A stretch of DNA of 64,000 nucleotides from Marsupella aquatica (Eukaryota > Plantae > Marchantiophyta). The notes under the pieces were generated by a model that worked only from the letters and a program-made list of their open reading frames with translations, made no database searches and was not told the origin of the DNA. Made by a program: the position numbers and the translations under genes. The stretch lies in NCBI GenBank assembly GCA_973895155.1, contig OZ316899.1, forward strand, positions 4,839,241-4,903,240, given 5' to 3'. Shown piece by piece: positions 27,794 through 45,319 of this stretch. Within the stretch, counting starts at the first letter, position 1. Each line of letters starts with the position of its first letter.

Positions 27794-30700
27794 TGTCACG
27801 TCATCGGCTGCGGCCTTAACTCAGACTTTAGCTTAGACGGGCACATCCCTCGTAAATTTGAGGGTTCGGGCAGGAAGGGAAGCACGTAATGCACCTTATT
27901 CTCGTAAACTAGCGCTAAGTGTGCATACTGCTAAATACGAACACCTCCTAGGTATGGTTTGTGTTCCGCCGCCGGAACGTACCTTAGTCGATAGCAGGAT
28001 CGACCCCGGCTTAAGGACTTCTAAGCCTTCGTGCTGTCCGCCTTCGATCCGGATTCGATGATACAGGTCCTCAACCCGTGCTCGCAACCACTTACCCGCA
28101 GGCTGCACCCTGTGCACGTCTCGAGTAGTGCGTTCGGCCTGGCGTTGCCACCCATATACGAGAAACCCACACACATACACGCGCACATGCATACAATCTC
28201 GATTTACACGAAGGAAAATGATGGGAAAGGATTTTACTACAAAGGGAACATATGCGTACACTTAGTTGACCCGACAGCCCCGGAATGAACAGGTTCAAGG
28301 CCAAGGGTGCACACTACAACGGAGCCCGGCTCCGCACTCGCCCGACGAGCTTAGTCCTACCCCCTCCCCTTGGTACTCTTTCATTCCCAGAGGTCGGGAC
28401 TCCCCGCACATACCGCGGACGCCCAACTTTGCAACTAAAACCCCCCCCCTCGACTCTACCGAGGGGTGCACTAAATACTAAGGGCCGAGGGACGGGGTGT
28501 CCTCTCGCCGAAGATTCACTAACTACGGTCCTAACTAAGCTGACAGTCAGGCCGGAAACGGCTGTGTCTTATTAGAAGATCCTAATCTATGCAGGCTGGA
28601 CAGCACGGCAGCGAAGCTGTACCTAAGGTAGGTGCCTGTCCCAAGAGCTTGACTAAGCTAGTCCTAATCCTACTCTATTCCTACTCCGCCGCTAATGCCT
28701 GGCACGCTTGCCAGAGCCACCTGAATGGGAGCGGCCATCCCGCTGCCTTCGAAGCCTGTCATTGTCCGCCTTGAGGAGTTGGACCTGGTCCAGCAAAGAT
28801 TCGTTCTCTCGCCTCGCCGCGTCCGTCTCCTCCGCTGCCTCCTGACAAGCCTCCTCCAGCTACTGGGCGTCACTTGTCAGTTTACCCGCCAGCTGGTCCT
28901 GCTTCTCGGCCTCGGTTTGGAGCCGCGCCACCTCGGCCTGCAGCGTGGCTATCTCCGCCGTGTCCCGCTGGGCCTGTTCCTCGGCCTCCTCCAGGTCTTT
29001 CTGCCAGGTGACAGTTTGATTCTTCAAACTGTCAATCTGGTTCCAGAGTCGTGTAATCTCGGCTTCGTTCCCAGCTTTGGCCTGTTCGGCTAGGGCGGTA
29101 AGAGCGTGCGCCTTTGCTAACAACTCATCGGCGGCTGCAACCTTGGGTCGTAGTTGCCGAAGCTCAGCCTCTTGAGCTGCAACTTCGTTCTTTAGGTACA
29201 CGGACTCCACCCGGTACCGCTCTATCCTCTGAAGGGCCTCTGACTGGGCCCAACCTGCCTTTACTGCGGCAACCAACTCCTGATTGAAGAAACAGGCTAC
29301 CTTCCGGGCCATGAACTCCCCGGTATCCCGGGCAATTTGATGAGAGAAATCTCCCAGAAGCCCGTTCAGAAATGTACCCGGTACGAAGAGTTCTGGGTGG
29401 TCCAGGTTGTGCCTGTCCGGAGTTGGGCACGGGCAGACGTCCACACGCGCGGGGGCCGGGGCAGTGACGTCCAGCCCTGGGGACGTAACGTTGGAAGGGG
29501 CTGGAGCGTCCTCCTGTAGCAATGTCCGGTTCTTCGGAATAGCCACCGGTGGGTCTTTGGGAGAACCGGGCTCGGGTAAGACCTCCGCCGTACCGACTTC
29601 TGTACTTAGCCCGGCCTGTTGGGTCGCATCAATGGTTGCAACACCCGACCCATCCGGTACCTCCTCGGTTACGACTACAGCTACTTGTGGAGGTGGGGTG
29701 GGTGAAGCTGGCGTGTCCGCTGGACTTCGGGCCTCGGGCTGGGGCCGTCTCTCCAAGGCCGGGAAAACCCACCTAGCTGGGACCAGCTTTGTAACGTTGA
29801 CACGGGGAAGGGTTCGTCGATCAAACCGGGCGTACCACTCAAGAATGATCTCGATGTGGCTAGCAAAATATGCCTTCCCGCCAATGTACAGCGTCTTCCT
29901 TCGCCGCTCCATCTCTTCATGGAATTTCTTAGCGAAGTACGACGCCCACCTCCTAGGTCGATAGTTCTCGACCTGGATAACCTGGGCGGCGGAGATCTCC
30001 CCCCGGGGTTCCATCATGTGGAGGCCGTACCTCTGGAACTCCAGTCGCTCAGCTATCTCGGGGATGAGGCAGGTTTTCATCACGAACCCGTTGTCCACTG
30101 CTCCCTCTGAGGGAAAACTTGAAGATTGGTACTTGGCTCCCTTGCCCCCGGGAGCCCGTGATTCGACTCGATGGTCACCTTCGGGTAACCCGAAGATCAT
30201 CCTGAGCCGTTCTTCCGTGAGGGACATACTCCTTCCCCGTAGCCGAGTATGTTGACGCGCGTCGTCATAATTCCTGACGAACTCCGTCATGTCCTCCCCG
30301 TAGTACCTGCAAGTGTTCTAGGGGAGGGAGGCGAGGTGCTCGAATCCCTGAGTCTTCAGGTACACCGCATGCTTGGGATGGAGGATGTTTTTGTGAACGT
30401 TTTCCCCCATGCGGTGCATCGTCACCTTGGCCACGGCTACCGTGGCCAATGGTAACCCGGATGCAGTGGCGGATTCCTTCCTCTTCTTCCCCCGTGACTG
30501 GCTTGGGGAAGGTGACACCTCCCCATCCTCCCGATCGGGCCTGGGTAGTGCTACTGCCGTTAGTAACGGGCCCGGGTCGGCCACGGTCACCATGTTGTCT
30601 GTCGGGGCCGCTCCTGGGGTCAGAGCAGGGGGTGGGGACGATATAGTATTGGCCCCCTGAGCGCTTGTTCCTCTGGGCCGCCTGGTCAAGGGTAGGGTAG

Positions 30701-31795
30701 CCTCGTCGTCATCGCTAAGATCCACAGCGTTGATGACGGAGCGTACTTGTGCTGGCTGGGCGATCGGTGGTGGGGTTTGGCTAGGCTGCGGCTGAGGCTG
30801 AAGCTGAAGCTGAGCCTGAGGTTGTACGGGTACGGGTACGGGTACAACTGAGTTGGTCATGTTGGTTGTTGGCCGAGCTCCTATGAAGCTCTGTAGGTGC
30901 TGGTAGAAGTTCTCCGAAGCGAGGGCAGACGACCTTGTCGAACGGGTAGTGCTGGACTCGCTGTTGATGATAGCCCAAACCTGAGCAGGGATGTGGTCGA
31001 AGTGATGTCGCTGCAAGTCGATCGTACCCGGGATATTGAAGACCTCGTCCGGAAGCCGAAGCAATGCTTCCCAGAACCCGATATATTTGTCTCCGTTGAA
31101 GAAGTACCCGGATACCTCTGCTGGTCGGTAAAGCTCGCTCTGAGACGGGTAGTCAAAGTTAAGGATGTAGTGGTGTCGTCCTGCTAGGCGGATGGCTCGC
31201 TCGTACTCGCGTTCGATTTCGTATCGGCGTGGGTTGGCGTGTTTCAATGAGTCGGCCAAGTGCCTTCCGGTAGAAAGGAACTGCGTCCAGAATCGAATGG
31301 CCGAGCTGGAGAGGATTGTGTGCGACATTCAGAGGAGATAGTAGTGGCAACTTAGAGCAAACGAGAGAGCTGGGGTCAAAGCTGGCGCGTGGACTGATGG
31401 ACTGGTGCACTACAAAGGGTTGGCTCCCCTTTTATACCTTGAGGGCTTGTCGATCCCCCGACGTCTCCTCGACGCCCATAGGCTGAACCGTTCACGCTTG
31501 TGGTGTGTCGGCCACTCCGCCGGTCTGAGTCAGCGCGTGTCAGTGGCCGCTTCCTTAAGTTTGTTATACGGACCCGAGGGAGGGGCCCCTCCACGCTCGT
31601 AACCCGGGTGTGCGAATAGCGACCAGCTGCCAGTCCAAACCTGAATTCCCCCTTATTGCCTAATGATATCCTACCCATAATGATTACCTAAATACTGTCG
31701 TTATGCTAATAATAGCGGTCTAAGACACTCCTAACGCGCGTGCCGAGCGCAGTTAGACCGAATCACTCATTAACCGCCGTACCGGCGGCTTCATA
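27794..31795 (-). mobile_element. 4.0-kb solo LTR, family A, containing a large ORF
   Basis: TGTCACG...TTCATA (likely a decayed CA end) with a perfect TSD GAGTC (27789-27793, 31796-31800). No gag/pol. Confidence 0.85.
28692..31328 (-). pseudogene. LTR-embedded ORF of about 878 codons with two in-frame TAG stops; plant-transposon-protein-like domain + coiled coil + basic tail
   Basis: ORFs 30318-31328 and 28860-30290 share a frame, which continues to TAG at 28692. TATAAAA on the minus strand at 31430-31436. Confidence 0.8.
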
Positions 31796-32651
31796 GAGTC
31801 AACTCTACACTTGGTTCACACACATACTTCTAGAACTATTCATATTTGGCCTTATGGAACTCTTGCCACCTACAACTCCCACTATGCACAAGCTCACATC
31901 AATAGAGAAAGGATACAGAATGCATACTTACTATGGCTCTAAGCACCTTCACTACCTTGTTGAACCCAGTCCTGAAGTCTTTTCAGCGCGTTTGCTGTGT
32001 TGTCTCTTTTGGCACCCAACACCTTATTCCAAAAACAAAAAGAATGCAATTTTACAAGTTAGATGCTTTGGAACCTTCTATGGTCTTAGTTGAATTCATG
32101 TATCCGTAAGTGGTGAAAGACAAGGAATACGAAAGCTGGTTGAAGAGCAGTGGACAACACACTAGCAGGAAGTGCTTCAACCAATCCACTGCCAAACGAA
32201 ACTCTTACACAGTCACAGTCTTTCAGTAACAAAAACTCAGTCAAACTTCATAATCAGAGTACAAACTCTATTCACAATAAGGATCTTTCAAGAAAAGGCC
32301 CCACCACAAGGGGGTGACAGAAAGCAGACAAAGCTTCCGGAAGATGGGAATGAAAAAAATTGCTCACAAGCTCAATTCATCCATGGCCCAGTTCAAGGCA
32401 AAACAGACTACAACATTCAGAAAGAGTCAACTCGATCTACACTTGGTTGTCCAGATCAAAATGCAGCACACACCCTTTGCTTGCTATCCAGCAATGCTCA
32501 CTCACCCCGCCTTTTTGAAATCTATAAGGGCAAGATAGAACAAATAACAATTGAGTTTCCGGAAAGCATTGGTTCTCAAGTTTTAAAATGAACATACAAG
32601 TTTCATTGCCTGCCTTGTCCGCAGCAGGCTAAGACCGATCAGAGGAAACAA

Positions 32652-33200
32652 CACTAGTACATTTTAGGTACTTTTCCGATACTCAAAACACGCATTTCTC
32701 AACGCGCCCGATACTAAACACAACGGAAAATGTCCGATACTCCCATCTACGGAACTTCCAATACTACCAACATTGGACATTATTATCCGATAGGTTTTGT
32801 ATCGAAAATGTTATCCAATACCCCGCATATCGGACAATGTCCGAAACATCTTGTATCGCAAATTGAGAGCCGACATGTTTTTTAGACATCCGATAATAAT
32901 AGTATCGAAAGCTAATTCGGATAGGTTTGGTTTTGGACATTTATCGATACAAGTCTTATCGGACATATTTTTGCGATACTAATTACAACGGAAATCATTT
33001 GCAAAGACTGAGGTATCGGTTACTGTCCGTTGAAATTGCTATCGGACCCCTCCTCGGCTGCGGGCTTAAGTGTCCGATTTGTGGAGTATCGGATAGTGGC
33101 TTCTGATTGTTATAGTATTAGAAAATCTGATACTTTGAGGATGGGAAGGGGTTTTTTGCTTTGGCAATACTGATGTGTGTCCGATATGTTTCCGATGTTA
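32652..33200. repeat. CACTA terminus (CACTAGTACA at 32652) with subterminal repeat array
   Basis: Roughly 20 TCCGATA/TATCGGA-type motifs in both orientations directly inside the CACTA motif, about 750 bp downstream of the TnpD stop. Confidence 0.8.
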
Positions 33201-33402
33201 TTTGAATGGGATATGGTATGGGACTTTCGTGTTTTACAATGTCTAGGTTGCATGGAATTAATGGATTCAGATATGGGGCATACTTTAAGCAATAGATATG
33301 TATACTGCATGAAATTGTGGACAATGAGAAAAATTGTAGAATGCCGATAAAAAGATAGTGCCGGTAAAAATATACATGAAGATGTGGGGTCTACAATTTA
33401 TA

Positions 33403-36400
33403 CTAACTCGTGGGGGGTATGTCTCTATCTTCCACTACAACTACGTTGGGTCTCTCTTGGACTATGGACCGTGATCTGGGAATATACGGCATGACAATGG
33501 ACCACTTGGGGTCATTGGGATAGGGTAGGTAAAAGCATTGCTCAAGGTGATGTGGGAAGGCAAAGGGATCTGAGGACCTCCAGTTGGAACTGATGACACT
33601 ATTTGCGGATGTCTTCAAACGAGTAAAACTGCATGCATCATCTTCACAAGTACGATTGTGGCCTACAAGATTCATCTTGAACCATTTGCACTTGAATACC
33701 ACTTCCTCCAAAGTAGTATGTGCATGGTACTTCACTGTTAGGATCTCCTCAATCTTCCCATAATGGGCCATGGTGGAGCGAATGGGATTCATGTCTGACA
33801 TGCTACTCTGGGAATCTTGGGTGAACCAACCCATCACCCCACAATCCTGTGTAGCTGCCCTCTTCTCATCAAGTCGTTCCACACGAAAATGTCTCCCCTT
33901 TGACCACATGGCAGTCTGAGTCGTGACTATAAGTAGTGGACCATGAACCAAGGTACGAAGTTTATCTGTCACGTTTGGGTAGTGTAATACACTCTCCCCG
34001 GTACCCACCAGGGCATCCACTTCTAACAACTTCTCCTTCATGTATGGGTGAAACTTGGGAAATAACCGTGGGCGTTGACTGTTTTGCTTCTCCTCCTCAT
34101 AAAATGTTGTCCACTCCCTGACAACCTCGGGTGAGTTATACAACATAAATGTTGTGAGCTGTAAATGCTCTGCTGAGCCTATGAGACGCTCTCCAGATGC
34201 CCCAGTGAGTCTATCATCCTCGTAGTCAGCCTCTCGTGCCACCTCATCTATCCATCCCCTAGGAGCACTAGGATCTAGTGTGGCAACTATGTTTGTACAG
34301 TAAAACATACTCCCTGCTCCAAGATGACGCTCCGCAATGCTACCTTCCACCCGAGTGATTAAAGACATATGACTTCATCACCCTCATATAACGCTCTACC
34401 CAATACATCCATCAACAATGTACTGGGCCTGCAATTGCAACCTCGCGCACTAAATGTATGAGGAAATGAACCTGACCATCAAAGAATGAGGGAGGGAGTG
34501 CCTTCTCCAACTTGCAGACAACCTCTACTCTAAATATCTCCATAGCAGCAATGTCATCCTCCTGTACCTCCTTTTGACATACCCATCTTAAGAGCTTACC
34601 CAATGACCAAAGGGCATCACGAAGTTCCTCACTACCCAATCCAATAATAGCAACTGGAAGAACATGTTCAAGCAACCGATGATAATCATGTGTCTTCAAG
34701 AAAGATGGCCATTTTGGAGAATCCTCCCCCCCAAATGCCTTCCGAAGATTGGTACCATAACCTGTGGGAAACCTCATCAACCCAATACGTCTGCGAAACT
34801 CAATGCGCTCTGCCCTTGTCAAAACCCAAGGAGGATGGATGCTAGGGGGAGCACCAGGGGGGTCCAAAGATGGCCAAAAACCTAAAAGACCATGCATCCC
34901 CATCTCCTCACAACTTTCTCTCCAATTGTTATTTTTTCCCCCATATAAATGGCGAATCAATGATTTCCCCACATTCCCCTCAATGTGCATAGGGTCTAAC
35001 AAGTGATTAATGGGCATATCTGACCAATATGGCAATTGTGACAATGCAGACAAACGGGTCATGCCACATCTGAATAATGGTAATGGATCACTTGGATCCT
35101 GAACTCTTCCCCATACCTCTCTCCAATATGTTGGATCCTTCCGCTGAGGTTGAGGACGAATATCAGGTTGGCCCTCATCAGTATCATAAAGGAATGGATC
35201 ACTCCTCCAAGGATGGTCTGGTGGAAGATATTTAGTATGACCAATGTAAACAATTTTTTGCAAAGTACTTGACTTGGGCCTGGCCACCCCCTCCAAATCG
35301 GGTCCACATGTAGAGCAAGCTCGATAGCCTGATGTTTGCAATCTAGAAACATATCCAAACCCTGCCCAGTGCATAGAAAACACATTCATAAAATAAGGTT
35401 CATCAAGGCAAAAATCTGCATAATTGCAATTAAATACAAGGTTTAGGTACTAGAGGAAATAAAGGTTTACCATACCTGGTAAATCATGCATGGTCCACAT
35501 AAGGATGGCCTTTAGAGTAAATACGTGGGATAAACCTCCTGTGTTGTGACGTCCATCATAACAATCCACTCCTCTCCACAGTTGTATCAACTCATCAATC
35601 AATGGCTGCAAGTACACATCAATCTTTTTAACTTGCTTAGGACCCGGAATAATCATGGAGAGTAGTAGGTGACCTTTCTTCATGGCCATCCAAGGAGGGA
35701 TGTTGTAGTTTGTCAACACTACTGGCCACACCGAATATGGTTTGGCTTTTCCTGTCAATGCAAAAGGGCTGATACCGTCTGCTGCCAAGCCTAGTCGAAC
35801 ATGTCGTGGGTCAATTTTGAACTCTCCCCATCTATCCTCTACAAATCGATTGGCAGGAGAGTCAATCATCATCCGCATGGCACTAGAGGGTACAACCATA
35901 TCAGAACAATTTTGTGAGTGCCATACCATCATCTCAGCCAACTCTGCACATCGGAATTGATGTCGCAATCGAGGGATAAGAGGAAAGTACCTCATAACCT
36001 TTTGCGGTACCTTCCCCGTCAACATGTCATCACGGTACCGTGGCTTCTGACATTTAGGACATGTAGTGGCATTTTCATGCTCACCGTTAAAAAGAATGCA
36101 ATCATCCACACATGCATGTATCACCTCATACTTCAGGCCAATGGACCTCAACACCTGTTTGCCTCTTTCCAAGAGGCTGGCAATGCGTTGCCTACTGGCA
36201 AAATACGATCATGCAAGGTACGGAAAACATCATCCAAAAGTAGATTGCTTGCCCCATGTCTTTGCTGCAAGTTGAGCAACAACATTATTGATGAGAGCCA
36301 AGATAACCTACTCCCCTCGAATATGCGAGTACGGGCATGACGTTGCGCCTCCTCCCATTGCTTGTCTTGGGACCCCCTAGAAGGATGTGGATGACTAGTC

Positions 36401-36642
36401 CTTTCATGGGTTGAACCAATGTCCTCCAAACCAATGTCATAATGATCATCATAGAATTGGTCCATGAGCTCATCCATGGCCCTCTCCTCATCAAGATGGT
36501 CTTGGATAGGATCATCACCATCATGTCGTACCCCATCCTCTTGCCTTTGCGGTTCATGCCCACGGTTGGCCACCATGGCCTCAACAAGGTGTTGTCGCAT
36601 AGCTCGTGATATTACCCCAATATCAGGCGTTACATATTGATT
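33403..36642 (-). pseudogene. tnpD: CACTA TnpD-type transposase (element 2), one frameshift and one TGA
   Basis: IHACVDDCILF, MRYFPLIPRL, PRHVRLGLAADGISPF, HDLPG/FGY across intron 35475-35362, LDPMHIEGN, LKTHDYH, PPSFFD, GPVHC*WMY, YGKIEEI, FKCKWF. Confidence 0.92.
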
Positions 36643-36763
36643 CTATCATACAACATCAATTAATTAATCTCATCAACACATGCACTGTTGAACAACATCA
36701 TTCTCATGTAAACATGTAAAATAAACTGACATATATATACATGTATGTAAGTCCAAAAAACTA

Positions 36764-37720
36764 TCATGGACGACAACGCAAGGACAATTTTGGTGCATCC
36801 CACTCATACTCACACAATAACTCCTCACCAGCTCTAATGGTCCTAACAGCTACTGTCATGATATGGTCGTCCATATGTTTCACAAAATATGGATGTCTAG
36901 GTGGACCAAACATTTGAATCCACTCTACATTAGCCTCCAAACCTCTATCTCTACCTGTGGTACTATTGATGTACCCTGCTAAATTACCGTTCCGAATAGA
37001 GTCACCATCAATCATCCGGCAATGCCATGGCCTAGTGAAGACCTCATCCGGGTCTGAGTCCATCCTCAATGCATACACACCCCAACTTGGGTGTTGACGC
37101 AACAAAATATTCCAACTCTTGGAGTTATATACAGCCCCAATGTAAGGAAAGAGGTGCTCTCCATCATAACCACGTCTCCATGGCTTTGGAGGGACCACAA
37201 TATCCTCCAAAGCAAAAAGACCATATCCTATATCAGGACCAATAGAGGATGCCTTCACTATCCAAGGGCGACCCCATATCTGAACTGGTTCATCTGTAGG
37301 AATAAAATCTGGAAATTTGAAGAGACTTGGAGAAAAGTCCTTAAAAACTTTGGCAGCCCTACCAGTGAGATAGGATAGTCCAAACCTGCCCTCAACGCAA
37401 ATATAATCTACGTTACCGGCTGGTCGATCACTAGTACCTAACACCTCCTCTCGGCTGTCTACCTGGTCCAGTGGTCCATACTGCCGTCTACGTCTACCAG
37501 ATCGTGGTCGTGTACGTAGGACCCTAGTAGTCACAACCTCGGGCCGAGAGACCGGTTCCCCCTCTACATGCTCATGTGTGGGCACGGGACTGGGGATAGG
37601 AGCAGGTGGGCTAAGAGGCATCTGGGCAGGAGGAACTGCAAGCAACTCCCTGGCCCTTGCTAGAAACCCTTCCAACCACACAGCTTGAGGAACCAAAGGA
37701 GGTGGGGGCCTACGAGGCAC
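36764..37720 (-). CDS. SET-domain protein exon (putative lysine methyltransferase) inside the CACTA element
   Basis: VKASSIGPDIGYGLFALEDI, PYIG, IDG...GNLAGYINS, ANVEW, AVRTIRAGEELLCEY appear in the canonical SET order. Open for 318 codons; AG acceptor at 37722-37721. Confidence 0.85.
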   Translation of the reverse strand: MPRRPPPPLVPQAVWLEGFLARARELLAVPPAQMPLSPPAPIPSPVPTHEHVEGEPVSRPEVVTTRVLRTRPRSGRRRRQYGPLDQVDSREEVLGTSDRPAGNVDYICVEGRFGLSYLTGRAAKVFKDFSPSLFKFPDFIPTDEPVQIWGRPWIVKASSIGPDIGYGLFALEDIVVPPKPWRRGYDGEHLFPYIGAVYNSKSWNILLRQHPSWGVYALRMDSDPDEVFTRPWHCRMIDGDSIRNGNLAGYINSTTGRDRGLEANVEWIQMFGPPRHPYFVKHMDDHIMTVAVRTIRAGEELLCEYEWDAPKLSLRCRP

Positions 37721-37855
37721 CTATTTCAACACACGTACAATGGTTTTACACAAATCAATAAATTAAGTAGTGGGATGTAAATGCAAGATAATTAAGCAAT
37801 ACCCTAAATTGGAATGCATATATGGAATGAATAGGGGACATAAACATATCTGTAC

Positions 37856-38086
37856 CTGGCTAGGCAAATACCCTGGCATATCACCCTCGTGGCGGCCATA
37901 GTTCTCGATGTGCTCACAAGTCTCCCACGCATGTTGAACCACAAGTCCCTTACATCTCACACACCAGCAAGGTATGGGTCCTAGTGGAGCACGAGGACGA
38001 TCTGGAGGAGGGGGTGGAGGAACATCCCCCTCAGACGAGCTTGTGTCTGAGTCTGAATCTGACATGGAACTATCAGAAGTAGACAT
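37856..38086 (-). CDS. First coding exon: acidic/Pro stretch + transposase-associated Zn-finger-like motif
   Basis: IPCWCVRCKG...EHIENYG parallels KCPCYICNC...KHLIQN at the N-terminus of TnpD 1. Phase-0 donor CAG|GTACA at 37856/37855. Confidence 0.7.
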
Positions 38087-38398
38087 CTGCATGCATGAAG
38101 TACACTCATTCATGTAAGCTGCATAAAAGAAGACAAGTGTTGGAGTATCAAAATAGAATTAATTAATGCATGACATACAAAAGTCCTGTTGTACCTCAAT
38201 GATACCCGCGCTTTGCCAGCCTACCGTGTCGTATTTTCTACACACAAGGTGTGGGACATCCAAAATCTCTGCATATATGGGTGAGCATTTTGCTAATGAG
38301 CATAATCTGTAAGTGCGAAAGAGTGTAGGAAGAACACACCACATATAAAAAAATTCCAACATACAAATTAAGTGTAAATGATGCGGCTTGTGAAGAGG

Positions 38399-39110
38399 GG
38401 ACATCATACCTCCTGGATGCGCGGTCTCACACTATGCATAGTGCATTGTCCAAAACAAAACCTACCTACCCCCTCACAAACATTGAACCACCCCTCCAAA
38501 CACAAGGTACTGTGCATCAAATCCAACACAACCATTAGCCTAATATATGGAGGTTGAACCTTATCCTAAGAAAAGGTGTAACCTTATCCTAGTAAAACCC
38601 CATAACCCTAAGCCCATAAACCCCTCCAAAGAAATGATCCAAATAGCTTTCACCCAGAAATGGTTCGTACAAAAACTTCTTGTAGTATTTTGTCTATCAT
38701 ATATCATAGTATTGAGTTCCCATCACCACAATCATCCCTAAACTTGCAAGGAACTTGCAAGAGGACATCATACCTCCTGGATGCACGGTTTCATGCATAG
38801 TGCATTGTCCAAAATCAAAACCTCCCTACCCCCTCAAAAAAAGTTAACCACCCCTCCAAAAGCAAGGTACTACACATCAAATCCAAACACAAAGATTAGC
38901 CTAATGAAGGGGTTTAATATTATCCTAACAAAAGGTATAATGTTATACTAATAAAACCTCTACGTACACCCATAATCCCCTATAAAGAAATGAAACAAAA
39001 GGCTTTCACCCGAAAATGATTCATACAAAAACTTCTTGTAGTATTTTCTTGATCCTATATTACATATCATAGTATTGAGTTCCCATCACCACAACCACCC
39101 CTAAAACACC
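38399..39110. repeat. Tandem duplication, about 365-bp unit, 2 copies, in the CACTA 5' region
   Basis: GGACATCATACCTCCTGGATGC at 38399 and 38763, colinear through CATAGTATTGAGTTCCCATCACCACAA. Confidence 0.9.
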
Positions 39111-40157: not shown

Positions 40158-42107
40158 TTGGGGCGGTTGGATGAGATGGGTGACTATGACGAAGTCGATC
40201 GGATATCGAGCATCATCATGTCGATGATGAGAACCATAAGGAAGGAAGAGCTTGAGTCGGAAAGGGCGAACAGAGAAGCGAATAGAACTACTCGATGTCT
40301 CCAAGAGGTTCTGAAGGAGAATGGGCAGTTCGATGGGAGAAATGTGACAAGCTACCTTAAGTCTTACTTGACAGAGGCAGTTGTCTACAAGTTGGACGAA
40401 GGGACAGCCGTGAAAGAGTTCATGGTGCTGGTTGAGAAGGAGTTGAGTTCGACGGTGCGAACCATCGTTGAGTCAGCTGAGGGTTGGGATGATTTCGACC
40501 AGAAGATGAAAGAGGAGTTCCAAGCTGAGGATGCTGATCGGGTCACGCAGGCTACCTTCTTGGATTGGGTGAATGACAGGAACAAGAAGCTGAAGGGGCC
40601 GCAAGAGCTCCTAAGGGAGTTCAAGAGAAGGGTGTCTCAGTTACCAAAGCGGGATGTGGGAATCATCGAGTTGCAGCGCTCGACGCTCTTCTTGCGGGCA
40701 GCCGATGAGGACCTTTGAGAAGAGCTTGAGAACGCGATGGAGCTGCTGGAACCTTCGAGAGTTACCTTGTCTAACGACTGGAACCAAGTTGAGAAAGCGG
40801 TGTCGAAAGTGAGCAATCGACACCGGCGGCGAGAGCTAGACAAGGAGGCTACCACTCTCGACCTGAGGCCGTCGGAACCGATATTGAGGAAAGGGAAGCG
40901 AGAGCCAGCGAAGGATGAGATCAAACCATCGGTGGATGATCTCGCAGAAATGATGCAGAACCTGAAGATCTTGGCGGCACATGCAGTCGAGAATCCAAAA
41001 CCGAGGGTTGCGAGTGCTCCCGAGAGGAAGCGAGAGATGCAGAGTTGGCCATGCATGTGGTGCGATAGCAAAGAGCATGACAAATGGGAGTGCCTGGACC
41101 TGAGGGAAGCTGCGGATAAAGGGCTGATCAAGTTCGTCGGTGAAGTTGGTCAGAAAAAGATATCGTTTGCCGATACTGAAGAGCCGATCCCATTCAACTC
41201 CAACAAGGGAGGCATGAAGGCTTTGGCTGAGAAGCGAGCAGGGAAGCGAGTCGAAGAGGCGTCCTCTTCGCACCTGGAAGCGAATGTTTACAATGTGGAG
41301 TTGGATGGCCCCGTGACGGAAACGGACAAATTTTACAAGCGCTTGGCGGATCTGGTGCGAGAGAGATCCGGATGGAGTGACCCGGTGCTGATCAATGCGA
41401 TAACGGTTGAGGTTGGGGCTAGTTGGGATGCCTTGGTCGAGTCAAAAAGGAAGAAAACCGACGAGGATGACACTCCGTCTCAATCAGGAGAACGAGAGAG
41501 GCGGGACACTCGAGACAAAGAAAGGAGGGTTAGGTTCGAAGAAGAGGAAATGAGCGAGAAAGAGCCGGAAAAAGGGAAACCGACCAGGAAGGACCCGGGC
41601 TGGGTGCTTGGCAGGGACGTGGACCAGACCATGTACCCGGAGGTCGTAGCTGAGAAGTTCTGGAGCCAACAGGCTCAAGGGTTTACCAACGCCGAGTTCT
41701 TTGGCAGTATGAGGCAAGAGATCCAGGAAGCGATCTTGGAGAGATCCAAGAGGAAACGGATTTACAAGGAGGGTGTGAACTCGGTCAGTTCAATGAAGGA
41801 CTATCTTTGGGGCGGATGTCCGAATGTGATGGTGAAGTTTGGGAATGTCAAGCAGGCTTGCAACATTTTTGTTCATGAGCACTTGTCGTTTCCGGTGATA
41901 CTGGGCATGCCGTTCATCACTGAATGGAGGATGGAGACAAAGGTTCTGGATGGTACTACCTTCATGGTGAAGGTTCGGAGCAAAGATGGGAAAGAGGTGG
42001 TTCAATTTCCGACTGTTTTACCTGGAAACGAGAGGAATAGGAAAGGGTTGAGGACTGAGAGTATCGATTCCGGTCCAGGTCTGGAAAACGACTTGGCACT
42101 TCGCTGA
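40158..42107 (+). pseudogene. gag: Ty3/gypsy Gag + CCHC + partial protease, one TGA
   Basis: FDGRNVTSYLKSY, CMWCDSKEHDKWEC, FPVILGMPF. The two ORFs are in frame. Confidence 0.85.
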
Positions 42108-42129
42108 AAAGAGTGGATCAGCGGAGTGC
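42083..42129 (+). promoter_or_regulatory. Putative -1 ribosomal frameshift signal
   Basis: G_GAA_AAC in the gag frame, 6-nt spacer, 12-bp stem 42096-42107/42118-42129. pol is in the -1 frame and open from 42059. Confidence 0.7.
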
Positions 42130-44375
42130 TCGTTCCTTAGCTCCTTGTGAAAGGGAAAATACGATGGATAATGGAGAGGAAGAGTCACTCGAATGTGCGG
42201 AGTCTAACTTGGGAATGGACAAGCTGCAGAAGGAGCTGGAAAGGCAGTACTCGTCTATGGCCGTGCTTGTATACTCGAGTACCAAATACAAAACGGTCGA
42301 CAAGAAGGTGAGGCCGGCGGCGATACCTTTGCCGGACGATGCGATGGAGGTTATGGATCGAGCGAGATTGGAACCAAGGCTGAGGCCAACTGATCGGATA
42401 GGGCATAAGTTTACTCAAGAGAGTTTGGCAAAGCTAAAGGTTGGTTCGGATGGGTTACTTACGGAGGTGGAGCAAGTGGCATTTCAAAAAATGATAATGG
42501 AGCATGGTAAGGCATTCTCGTTTTCGATTGAGGAGATTGGTTGTGCGGATCCGAGTAAGGTGACACCGATGGTCATCTTTACCATCCCTCATGTTCCATG
42601 GGATCTGAAACCGATTTCGGTTCCGCGGGCTTTAGCTCCAAAGCTTGCAGAACTGCTTAAGGAGAAGCTGAGCGCTAGGATTCTCAAGAGGTCTGATGCT
42701 CCCTACTCGAACAGATGGTTTACGGTGAGAAAGAAGAATGGAAGCTTGAGGTTCATTCAGGATATGCAACCTCCAAACAAGGTGACCATCAGGAATGTGG
42801 GAGTTGGGCCACTCGTGGATGAGTTTGTGGAGGAGTTCACTGGAAGGGCGATCTACTCCATGGGTGATTTGTTTTTGGGTTACGACCAGTTCCAGTTGGC
42901 GCAAGAGAGCCGAGACATTACGACTATGAGGACTCTGTTGGGCCTCTTGAGGATGTGCACTCTTCCTCAAGGGGCGACGAACTCAGTTGCACACATGCAA
43001 AATGCAATGAGCAAAATCTTGGAGCCGTTCATTCCGGAAAAAGTGAGACCGTTTATTGACGATGTCCCGATAAAAGGGTGCTTGGCTGAAGGGAGGGATG
43101 AGACCTTGAGAAGTGATGGGATCCGGCAGTTTGTGTGGGATCACATTGCGGATGTTAAGGCGGTTCTCGAGAAGCTGATTGATGTGGGAGTCACTCTTTC
43201 GGGAGAGAAGTCTGAATTCAGAATGAAAGAAGTGAAAGTCGTTGGGCAAATGTGCGGATCTTATGGGAGGAAACCGAACATGGATAAGGTGAGAGCTATT
43301 AGCGAGATGAAGGATTGCGAATCGGTGCCGGAAGTTTGAAGGTTTCTGGGTGCTTGTGTCTTTTATAAGATCTGGATCCCTCACTTCTCGCACCTGGCGG
43401 ACCCGCTCTATGAGCTGTTGAGGAAAAAGGTTAAGTGGAGATGGCTACCCGAGCATAGTGAAGCAATGGCTAAGCTTAAGAGCGCTCTCATGAGCCCACC
43501 AGTTCTCCAAGCTGCGGACTATGAGAACGGGCGACCACTGATCATGACTGTTGATGCGAGTCCGTTCGCAGCCGGGTGGGCTGTTGGGCAAGATGACGAG
43601 AATGGAGAAAGGTATGCGATCAGATTTGGGGCAAAAATTTTTACGGAAAGGCAAAGGAGATATGCTCAAGTTAAGAGAGAGCTTTGGGGTGCCAAGGTGG
43701 CACTCCATCAGGAGAGGAACTATTTGATTGGGGCGCCGGTGGTGGTTGAGACTGATTGCCAATCGCTGCTGGGAATGATCGCGAATTGTGACACGTCTGA
43801 CATAGCGATGCTCAGGTGGATTGCTTTCATTCGGATGTTCAACCCTGAGCTAAGTCACATTGCGGGAAAGGATAATCTGGTTGCCGACATGCTGTGAGGG
43901 CGAGATTCGGAAATGAGGTAGCAACGAGAGTTGGCAAGGTGACCAGAACCAAAAGTGTTGGAAGTCTAGAGTTCAAGGAGGAACTCTACTCGGGAGAGTT
44001 GCTGGATATCAGACGTTACATTAGCACTTTGGAGAAGCAACCAGAGTGGAGTTACCAGGAGTTCGTCAAGATCCGGAAGAGATCTTACAAGTTCCTATTG
44101 AGGGAGGGTTATTTGTGGCGAAGGCATAAGGACCCAAGTCAGTTGTTGCAGAGGGTTGTGGATACTAAGGGTGAGAAAGACCGAATTCTCAAAGAGAGCC
44201 ATGATGCTGACATGGCTGGGCACAAAGGGGTGCATTCGACTTACGAGAGGGTTCGGAAGCTGTACTGGTGGCCAGGTTTGTACTTGGCCGTTCGAGACTA
44301 TGTCGAGACTTGCGAGGTTTGCCAGTTTTACTCGAGGATCCGACATAGGGATGGATTGGTTCCGACTTACCCCCA
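42083..44375 (+). pseudogene. pol: Ty3/gypsy pol: RT, RNase H, integrase Zn domain, truncated
   Basis: KKNGSLRFIQD, DLFLGYDQ, LPQGATNS, FIDD, VDASP, KRELWG, VETDC, HIAGKDNLVADML, H..GH..YWWP..CEVC. Confidence 0.93.
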
Positions 44376-44377
44376 TT

Positions 44378-45319
44378 TGCTGCGTGGATAGCAACGTTGG
44401 AAGCGGCTTGAGCTCCTCTTTCCAACGAGGTCAATTATAGCTGATTTGGCCAAATACACAAAAAGTTATGTCCCCGCAACCGAGAGGGGGTACTCATTGC
44501 TACGCTAACCCGAGTTTGGCTAGCCTAGCTATCCTATCTAACCTTAGAAGAGTTAACCCATGGCCTCGGGCTAAGCTGCTATCCGTGTCCGTTGTCCGCT
44601 ATCTGTGTCCATTGTCCGTGTCCGCTATCCGTGTCCGTTGTCCGTGTCAGTTGTCCGTGTTCGTTGTCCGTGTCCACTATTTGTGCCTGCTGTCTACTAT
44701 CCGTGTCCATTGTCCGTGTCCGTTGTCCCGCTATCCATTGTCCATGTCCGTTGTCCGTGTCTGTTGTCTGTGTCCGTTGTCCGTGTCCGTTGTCCGCTAT
44801 CCGTTGTCCCGGGTTTAGTCTAACCCCAATCTAAATCCGCTAGCCACTAGCCACTATCCGGTATCTGTATCCGCTAACCTCTATTCGCTATCCACTATCC
44901 GTGTCCGCTAACCTCTATCCGTATCCGCTATCCGTGTCCGCTAACCTCTATCCATATCCGCTATCCGTGTCTGCTAACCTCTATCCATATCCGCTATCCC
45001 GGGTTACACACTAACCCGTCACACTAATAAGATCATATCTTTCCTAATACACCTCCGTTTTGAGAGTGTTTTATATCAATTTTACTCGCCTTGACCAGAT
45101 CTTTCCAATGCTCTTTACAGATCCGGATTTGGTGACATATTGAAAGAGATATGGTCGCCGACCACCCGCAACATAGCTTTTATTTCCCTACTATTAATGC
45201 CATGATTGCCCTTATTCTTGCCATCTTGCTAATTGTTATGCAATATCAATAGCTACTCCTTGCATACAGCAGCCTAGTTAATCAGATTAAAGAATAAGGA
45301 CCATGTCATCGGCGTCACA
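44378..45319 (-). mobile_element. LTR fragment of the same family as 1-160, with an internal minisatellite
   Basis: Ends GGCGTCACA at 45319, where it cuts the minus-strand gag. The left end is lost. Confidence 0.7.
44580..45000. repeat. TCCGTG/TCCGTTG microsatellite-like tract followed by about 33-bp CTAACCTCTATCC repeats
   Basis: Directly visible periodic sequence. Confidence 0.9.

Follow-up and report, generated by a model that had tools for sequence, protein, structure and literature searches.

A SET-domain exon between the zinc knuckle and the transposase of a CACTA transposon family of liverworts, and its predicted alternative splicing

In En/Spm, the CACTA-type DNA transposon of maize, TnpA and TnpD are both made from one transcription unit by alternative splicing, in which a single 5' exon is joined to alternative downstream exons. 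In primates, a SET domain has been fused to the Hsmar1 transposase to give SETMAR, a single domesticated host gene with one fusion protein as its product. SET-domain genes have also been reported from Phytophthora, in transposons of the HarbingerS and MuDR types (Kojima and Jurka 2014, Repbase Reports, cited in PMC12730594), and epigenetic modifiers borne by other mobile elements include VANC of the Arabidopsis VANDAL (MuDR) elements and TET/JBP of fungal DNA transposons (PMC12730594). Here we describe a transposon copy found in a stretch of 64,000 nucleotides from the liverwort Marsupella aquatica (assembly GCA_973895155.1, contig OZ316899.1, positions 4,839,241 to 4,903,240 of the forward strand; hereafter, the window). 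It is a decayed, 5'-truncated copy of a family of CACTA (En/Spm-type) DNA transposons of liverworts and related bryophyte-associated samples. On its minus strand, a coding exon with a zinc knuckle is followed by an exon encoding a SET domain and then by the body of the transposase TnpD. We put at about 70% the probability that the window holds a decayed, 5'-truncated copy of a family in which the donor of the zinc exon is joined either to the acceptor of SET or to that of TnpD.

A first-pass annotation of the window had proposed this arrangement, and direct reading of the minus strand confirmed its coordinates for the zinc exon, the donor and the two acceptors (Table 1), as well as an uninterrupted SET frame of 318 codons with its own stop at 36764. 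The presence of a CACTA transposase was likewise borne out: the pieces downstream of SET gave TnpD-type Pfam matches to Transposase_21 (140.8 bits), DUF4218 (43.7 bits) and DUF4216 (31.1 bits), all above their cut-offs. The profile search proposed for the SET frame was also positive, with 26.8 bits against a cut-off of 22.4 for the Pfam SET family (PF00856), and the corresponding gene model of Calypogeia fissa (P0001, an NCBI prediction) scored 34.1 bits. The G+C content is 46-53% in the exons, 30% in the gap that interrupts TnpD and similarly low in intron 1 and in the spacer after SET (Table 1); this composition fits the exon-intron model, the putative introns being plant-intron-like.

The loci compared with the window are Logan contigs (L001-L003 and L006), a copy from C. 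fissa (L005), two loci of Riccia sorocarpa (L004 and L007) and 18 metagenome loci of the Joint Genome Institute (L010-L027), the metagenome scan having been made with an alignment of 10 SET sequences. The phase-0 donor of the zinc exon is conserved, reading CAG/GTACAG (slash, splice junction) in the window, L001 and L005; in other clades it is GTG/GTAAGT or ATG/GTATGT (metagenome clade) and GTAAGT (L007). The SET frame opens exactly at AATAG/G in the window, L001/L005, metagenome and L007 clades, and the TnpD frame opens exactly at ATAG/AAY in three clades; at both acceptors, the TAG is an in-frame stop. The acceptor at 36642 opens NQYVTPDIGVISRAMRQH... of the TnpD frame, which begins with Asn in both the window and metagenome clades and is conserved from the AG onwards (NQ[YF]V..D..V..RA.RQH). 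In the SET exon, no Met is conserved, and a conserved, confidently modelled helix (residues 12-28) precedes the first Met of the window copy. In L004 (Riccia) and L006, the zinc knuckle, the linker and SET form one uninterrupted open reading frame (ORF), so that no splicing needs to be invoked there, and L004 keeps GAG/GTACAG inside this ORF at the matching place. The NCBI gene model P0001 uses the same junction between exon 1 and SET as that proposed here. These comparisons support the view that SET and TnpD each lack a conserved start of their own and that their conserved phase-0 acceptors match the single phase-0 donor. Considered jointly, the splice signals, the zinc-SET ORF, the TnpD frame and the identity of the zinc exon favour one donor with two acceptors as the best reading.

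Two other arrangements have to be compared with these features. In the first, SET would be an independent gene nested in the first intron, with its own promoter and start and without relation to the zinc exon; its own stop and the separate ORF listed by prokaryote-style gene callers would agree with this. However, the absence of a conserved Met, the start of the ORF at a conserved AG, with the frame closed on its upstream side by the TAG of this acceptor, the conserved helix that precedes any Met and the joint zinc-SET ORF of L004 and L006 make such a nested gene quite unlikely. In the second, SET and the transposase would be made as one fusion protein, in the manner of SETMAR, by read-through or recoding of the SET stop. 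Some automatic gene models do join pieces of SET to TnpD (P0053 and P0077), but they derive from decayed copies; moreover, every locus has a stop that closes the SET frame, the spacer shows no conservation and is rich in A+T, and the TAG of the TnpD acceptor would stop the frame, so we give this fusion almost no credence. The reading of one donor with two acceptors is thus retained below.

The layout is conserved throughout the family. The order of zinc exon, SET and TnpD was recognized in all 25 of the 25 related loci long enough to show at least two of the parts; among the 18 metagenome loci, nine have the zinc exon followed by SET, nine have SET followed by TnpD, three have all three parts, and none has any other order. 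Relatives of the SET exon are few, with nine found by word search and 92 among 1.84 billion representatives. The contig depth over SET equalled that over TnpD in four DNA runs, so the bulk of the family copies carry SET. The first-pass annotation had raised the possibility that SET is present in only this copy, or that it is an independent insertion. The former does not hold, since SET was found in other loci and across a multi-copy family, and nothing suggests a separate insertion. Across 64 pairs of loci, which are not independent of one another, the identities of SET and of TnpD rise and fall together (Pearson 0.95), which fits one old acquisition. Taken from these sequence comparisons, the SET exon is supported as an old, conserved part of the CACTA lineage, situated between the zinc exon and the TnpD body.

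Selection was assessed by the ratio of nonsynonymous to synonymous substitution rates (dN/dS) among the window, L001 and L005, at dS values of 0.7-2.0. The ratio was 0.12-0.21 for the zinc part, 0.27-0.33 for the whole SET exon (0.46-0.49 for its linker and 0.19-0.28 for its core) and 0.07-0.12 for TnpD. Between lineages, intron 1 is 43-54% alike and the spacer 45-63%, as against 66-80% for the exons (72-80% for the zinc exon). By these measures, the zinc, SET and TnpD parts are all under purifying selection between lineages, and the dN/dS below 1 for which the first-pass annotation had called was obtained at that level. These values also bear on the origin of SET. DNA transposons often capture fragments of host genes, and the modest Pfam score (26.8 bits) would suit a transduplicate of this kind, carried without function. 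Nevertheless, the SET core has a low dN/dS at a dS of about 1 or more, its catalytic motifs are invariant or nearly so in 41 relatives, and SET is placed identically in the two liverwort classes and a third clade. The search of 1.84 billion representatives, with its 92 relatives, revealed no conserved host parent, and one lineage-specific gene of Calypogeia (P0073) is without other kin in a word-based search. A functionless host fragment is therefore very improbable, and an exon maintained by the active lineage remains the preferred view.

The Calypogeia gene P0073 (L008, 10001-11512) is a single-exon gene of 503 amino acids that belongs to the same SET clade, and a second copy (P0213) is present. 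It has Cys-rich motifs at its N-terminus, its neighbours are ordinary genes (mL59-like and FtsH), and no transposase lies nearby. Other kin of P0073 were not found by a word-based search. This relative may have been domesticated or be mobile in some other way, and it proves neither capture nor domestication. In two of the compared copies (L005, 6473-8530, and L001, 2-625, both minus strand), an extra gene on the opposite strand lies between the 5' terminus and the zinc exon; the window lacks this gene. As annotated in C. fissa, it encodes 532 amino acids, is Gly-rich and Lys/Glu-rich and has no Pfam match, and it could represent a TnpA-like partner.

The SET exon comprises the conserved helix of residues 12-28, a basic stretch (RTRPRSGRRRR) and a SET core at about residues 100-311. 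In an AlphaFold model, the core has a predicted local distance difference test score (pLDDT) above 90, and a Foldseek search with it gave a probability of 1.0 for SETD8, LegAS4, MLL1-4, SUV39H2, ATXR5 and other SET enzymes. The nearest solved chains by profile were Legionella LegAS4 and a close relative of it (E-value about 4e-5), and a search of the ESM Atlas returned only 'SET'. The motifs conserved in the family are GYG-LFA, LFPY-G-Y, IDGDP, GN-AGYINS, PNVEW and GEEL...Y, and little or no variation exists among the 41 relatives in GxG, FPYxG..Y, GYINS and GEEL..Y. Of the cofactor-binding and catalytic motifs, the family thus keeps GYG, FPYIG..Y, the Asn of motif III and GEELLCEY but has Ser for the His that usually follows this Asn; the window copy carries, in addition, the substitution P241S. 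Because these motifs are kept, the SET part of the family is probably an active lysine methyltransferase. The family SET has no Cys-rich region in the post-SET position. Its conserved basic stretch (R..R.RS.R.RR) resembles a nuclear localisation signal and may act as one.

The zinc exon begins with an acidic, Ser/Asp-rich head and a proline run, followed by the knuckle CWCVRCKG...EH...YGRH, which can be read as C-W-C-x-x-C-K-G ... H ... C-E-H ... G-R-H. When the exon family was compared by hhalign with the N-termini of TnpD proteins bearing the Transposase-associated domain (Pfam PF13963), a probability of 94.5% was obtained (E-value 7e-8, residues 36-66); the alignment pairs CxCxxCKG...EH...YG, and the exon contains no more than the C-terminal half of the domain. 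To judge from this alignment, the zinc exon represents the core, with its zinc knuckle, of the domain found at the N-terminus of TnpD in the CACTA elements of seed plants. The same kind of zinc knuckle stands directly on the N-terminus of TnpD in a gene model of the fern Adiantum nelumboides (P0123). This model spans 3.7 kb for 551 amino acids, so that about 2 kb is intronic and might harbour a comparable cassette.

Several points weigh against the reading of one donor with two acceptors and an active SET. Pfam PF13963 gave no match to the window exon alone, and the zinc exon of L001, matching profile positions 35-61 of 74, scored no more than 14 bits where the cut-off is 27.7; the likeness of the knuckle to the TnpD N-terminus, as claimed in the first pass, is thus upheld by hhalign but not by a Pfam match for the window exon. 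Motif III, NH in other SET domains, reads NS throughout the family (His replaced by Ser), so that activity is not assured. Close copies of the metagenome clade have dN/dS values of 0.55-1.0, and single copies such as that of the window are not under selection; such values would result from neutral decay of inserted copies, with selection confined to the active lineage. The spacer between SET and TnpD is only 121 nucleotides long and shows no clear poly(A) signal. Both products of the alternative splicing are predicted from genomic DNA; the four runs found to contain the stretch are all DNA, and neither splice junction occurs in their contigs. Lastly, most TnpD frames have a Met at most 15 residues after the acceptor (at 15 residues in the window and L005, and at residue 7-8 in the metagenome clade), so that an internal start is possible. 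In that case, the zinc-SET protein would be made as described here, and TnpD would be translated without the zinc exon, starting at the internal Met of a separate or unspliced message. Against such a start, L001 has ATA (Ile) at the position of the first Met (ATG) of the window and no Met before the conserved region, and the residues from the AG to that Met are conserved. In addition, the frame opens exactly at ATAG/AAY in the three clades, and the zinc knuckle heads TnpD in other plant CACTA elements. We consider an internal start of TnpD unlikely, and return to the reading in which both acceptors are served by the donor of the zinc exon.

Under the reading of one donor with two acceptors, the phase-0 donor of the zinc exon would be joined to either of the two phase-0 acceptors. 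Joining to the near acceptor would give a zinc-knuckle-SET protein of about 395 amino acids with its own stop and the basic stretch similar to a nuclear localisation signal, whereas joining to the far acceptor would give the TnpD body, namely the transposase. The shared zinc knuckle would bring SET to whatever the N-terminus of the transposase binds. It is conceivable, although we find it rather doubtful, that an active CACTA lineage has encoded a working lysine methyltransferase from a time earlier than the divergence of the two main liverwort classes, and that this enzyme shares the knuckle by alternative splicing and marks the chromatin of its own copies (or a partner protein) for anti-silencing or self-marking, in place of TnpA. 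The anti-silencing role of SET is pure conjecture.

The features of the window copy are listed in Table 1. Because CAG/ATG is conserved directly before the start codon, an untranslated leader exon is suggested to lie further upstream, in a part missing from the window copy; in a Riccia gene model, a short exon is found upstream of the zinc-SET exon.

Table 1. Features of the CACTA copy in the window (positions in the window; slash, splice junction or its likeness).
Feature	Positions	Strand	Remarks
Acceptor-like CAG before the ATG of the zinc exon	38087..38089	-	CAG/ATG kept in the window, L001 and L005
First coding exon (zinc exon), 77 codons (231 nt) from ATG at 38086	37856..38086	-	Ends in phase-0 donor CAG/GTACAG
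Intron 1, 135 nt, GT...AG, 31% G+C	37721..37855	-	
SET exon, 318 codons and TGA (36766-36764)	36764..37720	-	Phase-0 acceptor ...AATAG/GTG
Spacer from SET stop to TnpD acceptor, 121 nt, 27% G+C	36643..36763	-	Poorly conserved
TnpD exon (acidic N-terminal part, first half of Transposase_21)	35471..36642	-	Phase-0 acceptor GATAG/AAT; broken by a 1-nt deletion
Rest of TnpD (end of Transposase_21, DUF4218, DUF4216)	33403..35368	-	Broken by a TGA and a 2-nt deletion
3' subterminal region and terminus	32652..33402	-	Outermost bases CACTAGTACATT... read on the plus strand from 32652

The element has its 3' end at 32652, with the sequence CACTAGTAC; the 5' terminus of the Calypogeia copy L005, at 5555 (CACTACTACATT..TTTTCCGATA), closely resembles it. 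An inverted partner of this 3' end was not found in the window. The motif TATCGGA occurs 10 times in the whole window, against 3.7 expected, and nine of the 10, in both orientations, lie within 32675-33186, that is, in the approximately 530 nucleotides adjoining the 3' end, where they constitute subterminal repeats. The 4.3-kb 5' part of the Calypogeia copy, which includes the opposite-strand gene, had no DNA or protein match in the window. Because the family 5' end is missing, the window copy is probably without a promoter.

The window copy cannot make transposase. According to tblastn, an alignment with relatives and the family majority in four sequencing runs, its TnpD is broken by one stop and two frameshifts; the first-pass annotation was correct on the stop and had counted one frameshift too few. 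The first break is a 1-nucleotide deletion near 36157-36160, where other family copies have one more base. The second is the TGA at 34414-34412, for which the family majority has CGA (G at 34414 on the plus strand) and across which L005 reads ...PVHCRWMFW..., and the third is a 2-nucleotide deletion near 34352-34356, where the family majority has two extra bases. The differences between the window and the family majority (32640-38560) are mostly positions at which the window has A/T and the family G/C: in run X1, A>G accounts for 51 and T>C for 60 of about 284 window/family differences, far above the other changes. As a pattern of base changes, this excess is the signature of deaminated methyl-cytosine, that is, of C-to-T decay in a silent copy.

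The first-pass annotation had pointed out that SET is open in this copy while TnpD is broken. With three breaks in about 3.1 kb of TnpD, 1.15 breaks would be expected in the 1.19 kb of the zinc and SET exons, and the probability of finding none is about 0.32. The open SET frame was therefore rejected as a sign of selection on the window copy, and it is most likely a matter of luck. The frame also carries the private substitution P241S (TCT at 37000, where the family majority has CCT), at a Pro that is kept in at least 90% of the relatives.

Other repeated and coding sequences surround the copy. Just upstream of the zinc exon, at 38400-39100, are two tandem units of about 356 nucleotides that are 84-85% alike; by contig depth they are multi-copy, they differ from the 5' part of the Calypogeia copy, and they may be the 5' region of a subfamily. 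About 2 kb upstream of the zinc exon, the ORFs of a long terminal repeat (LTR) retrotransposon (Gag, protease, reverse transcriptase, RNaseH and integrase) occupy 40158-44391 on the plus strand. No pair of LTRs was found around them, and this retrotransposon may have cut off the 5' end of the CACTA copy. After the retrotransposon ORFs, an array of 13-nucleotide units (approximately TGTCCGYTATCCG) extends over 44563-44973; it recalls subterminal repeats, but with a motif other than the TATCGGA found at the 3' end of the CACTA copy. Directly beyond this 3' end, two long ORFs of 476 and 336 amino acids (28860-31328, minus strand), proline-rich and coiled-coil-like, are not part of the element.

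In bryophytes, transposons are for the most part marked by methylation of histones, and a transposon-borne SET enzyme is for this reason directly testable in liverwort models. Transposons that carry epigenetic enzymes of their own are rare and informative on the arms race with host silencing, and the splicing tie of such an enzyme to the zinc module of the transposase, if true, suggests a built-in targeting to the element. For annotation, the SET-domain 'genes' predicted in liverwort assemblies, such as those of Calypogeia and Riccia, can be exons of transposons. Literature searches yielded no description of SET in CACTA elements or bryophyte transposons, and nothing relevant came from papers on the Calypogeia genome.

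The closest described system is En/Spm, which belongs to the same superfamily, as indicated by Transposase_21, DUF4218, DUF4216, the CACTA terminus and the subterminal repeats, and with which the present family would share two products from one unit. The situation in liverworts is different in that the second predicted product is a SET methyltransferase, and not the DNA-binding protein TnpA, and is encoded upstream of TnpD, inside the first intron of the coding region. The exon that the two products would share encodes the zinc knuckle, whereas the leader of En/Spm is untranslated. No TnpA-like ORF is recognized downstream here, where the distance from the end of TnpD to the terminus is only 750 nucleotides. 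As in SETMAR, splicing would tie SET and the transposase together within a single transcription unit, although here SET has its own stop, the family is mobile and of high copy number, and only the N-terminal zinc knuckle would be common to SET and the transposase. In motif III, Legionella LegAS4 / RomA likewise has the form YIN.S instead of NHS, but these are bacterial effectors with ankyrin repeats and show only about 23% identity. As LegAS4 illustrates, the NS variant of motif III can be compatible with activity. The HarbingerS and MuDR elements of Phytophthora, as far as they are described in the paper that cites them, are also DNA transposons with a gene of the SET histone-methyltransferase type, and differ in superfamily and in host (oomycetes). 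VANC and TET/JBP embody the same concept, that of a mobile element with a protein directed at the epigenetic state of the element itself; their biochemistry differs, and the function is conjectural here. In short, this liverwort family would combine two known kinds of system, namely epigenetic enzymes borne by transposons and the alternative splicing of CACTA elements.

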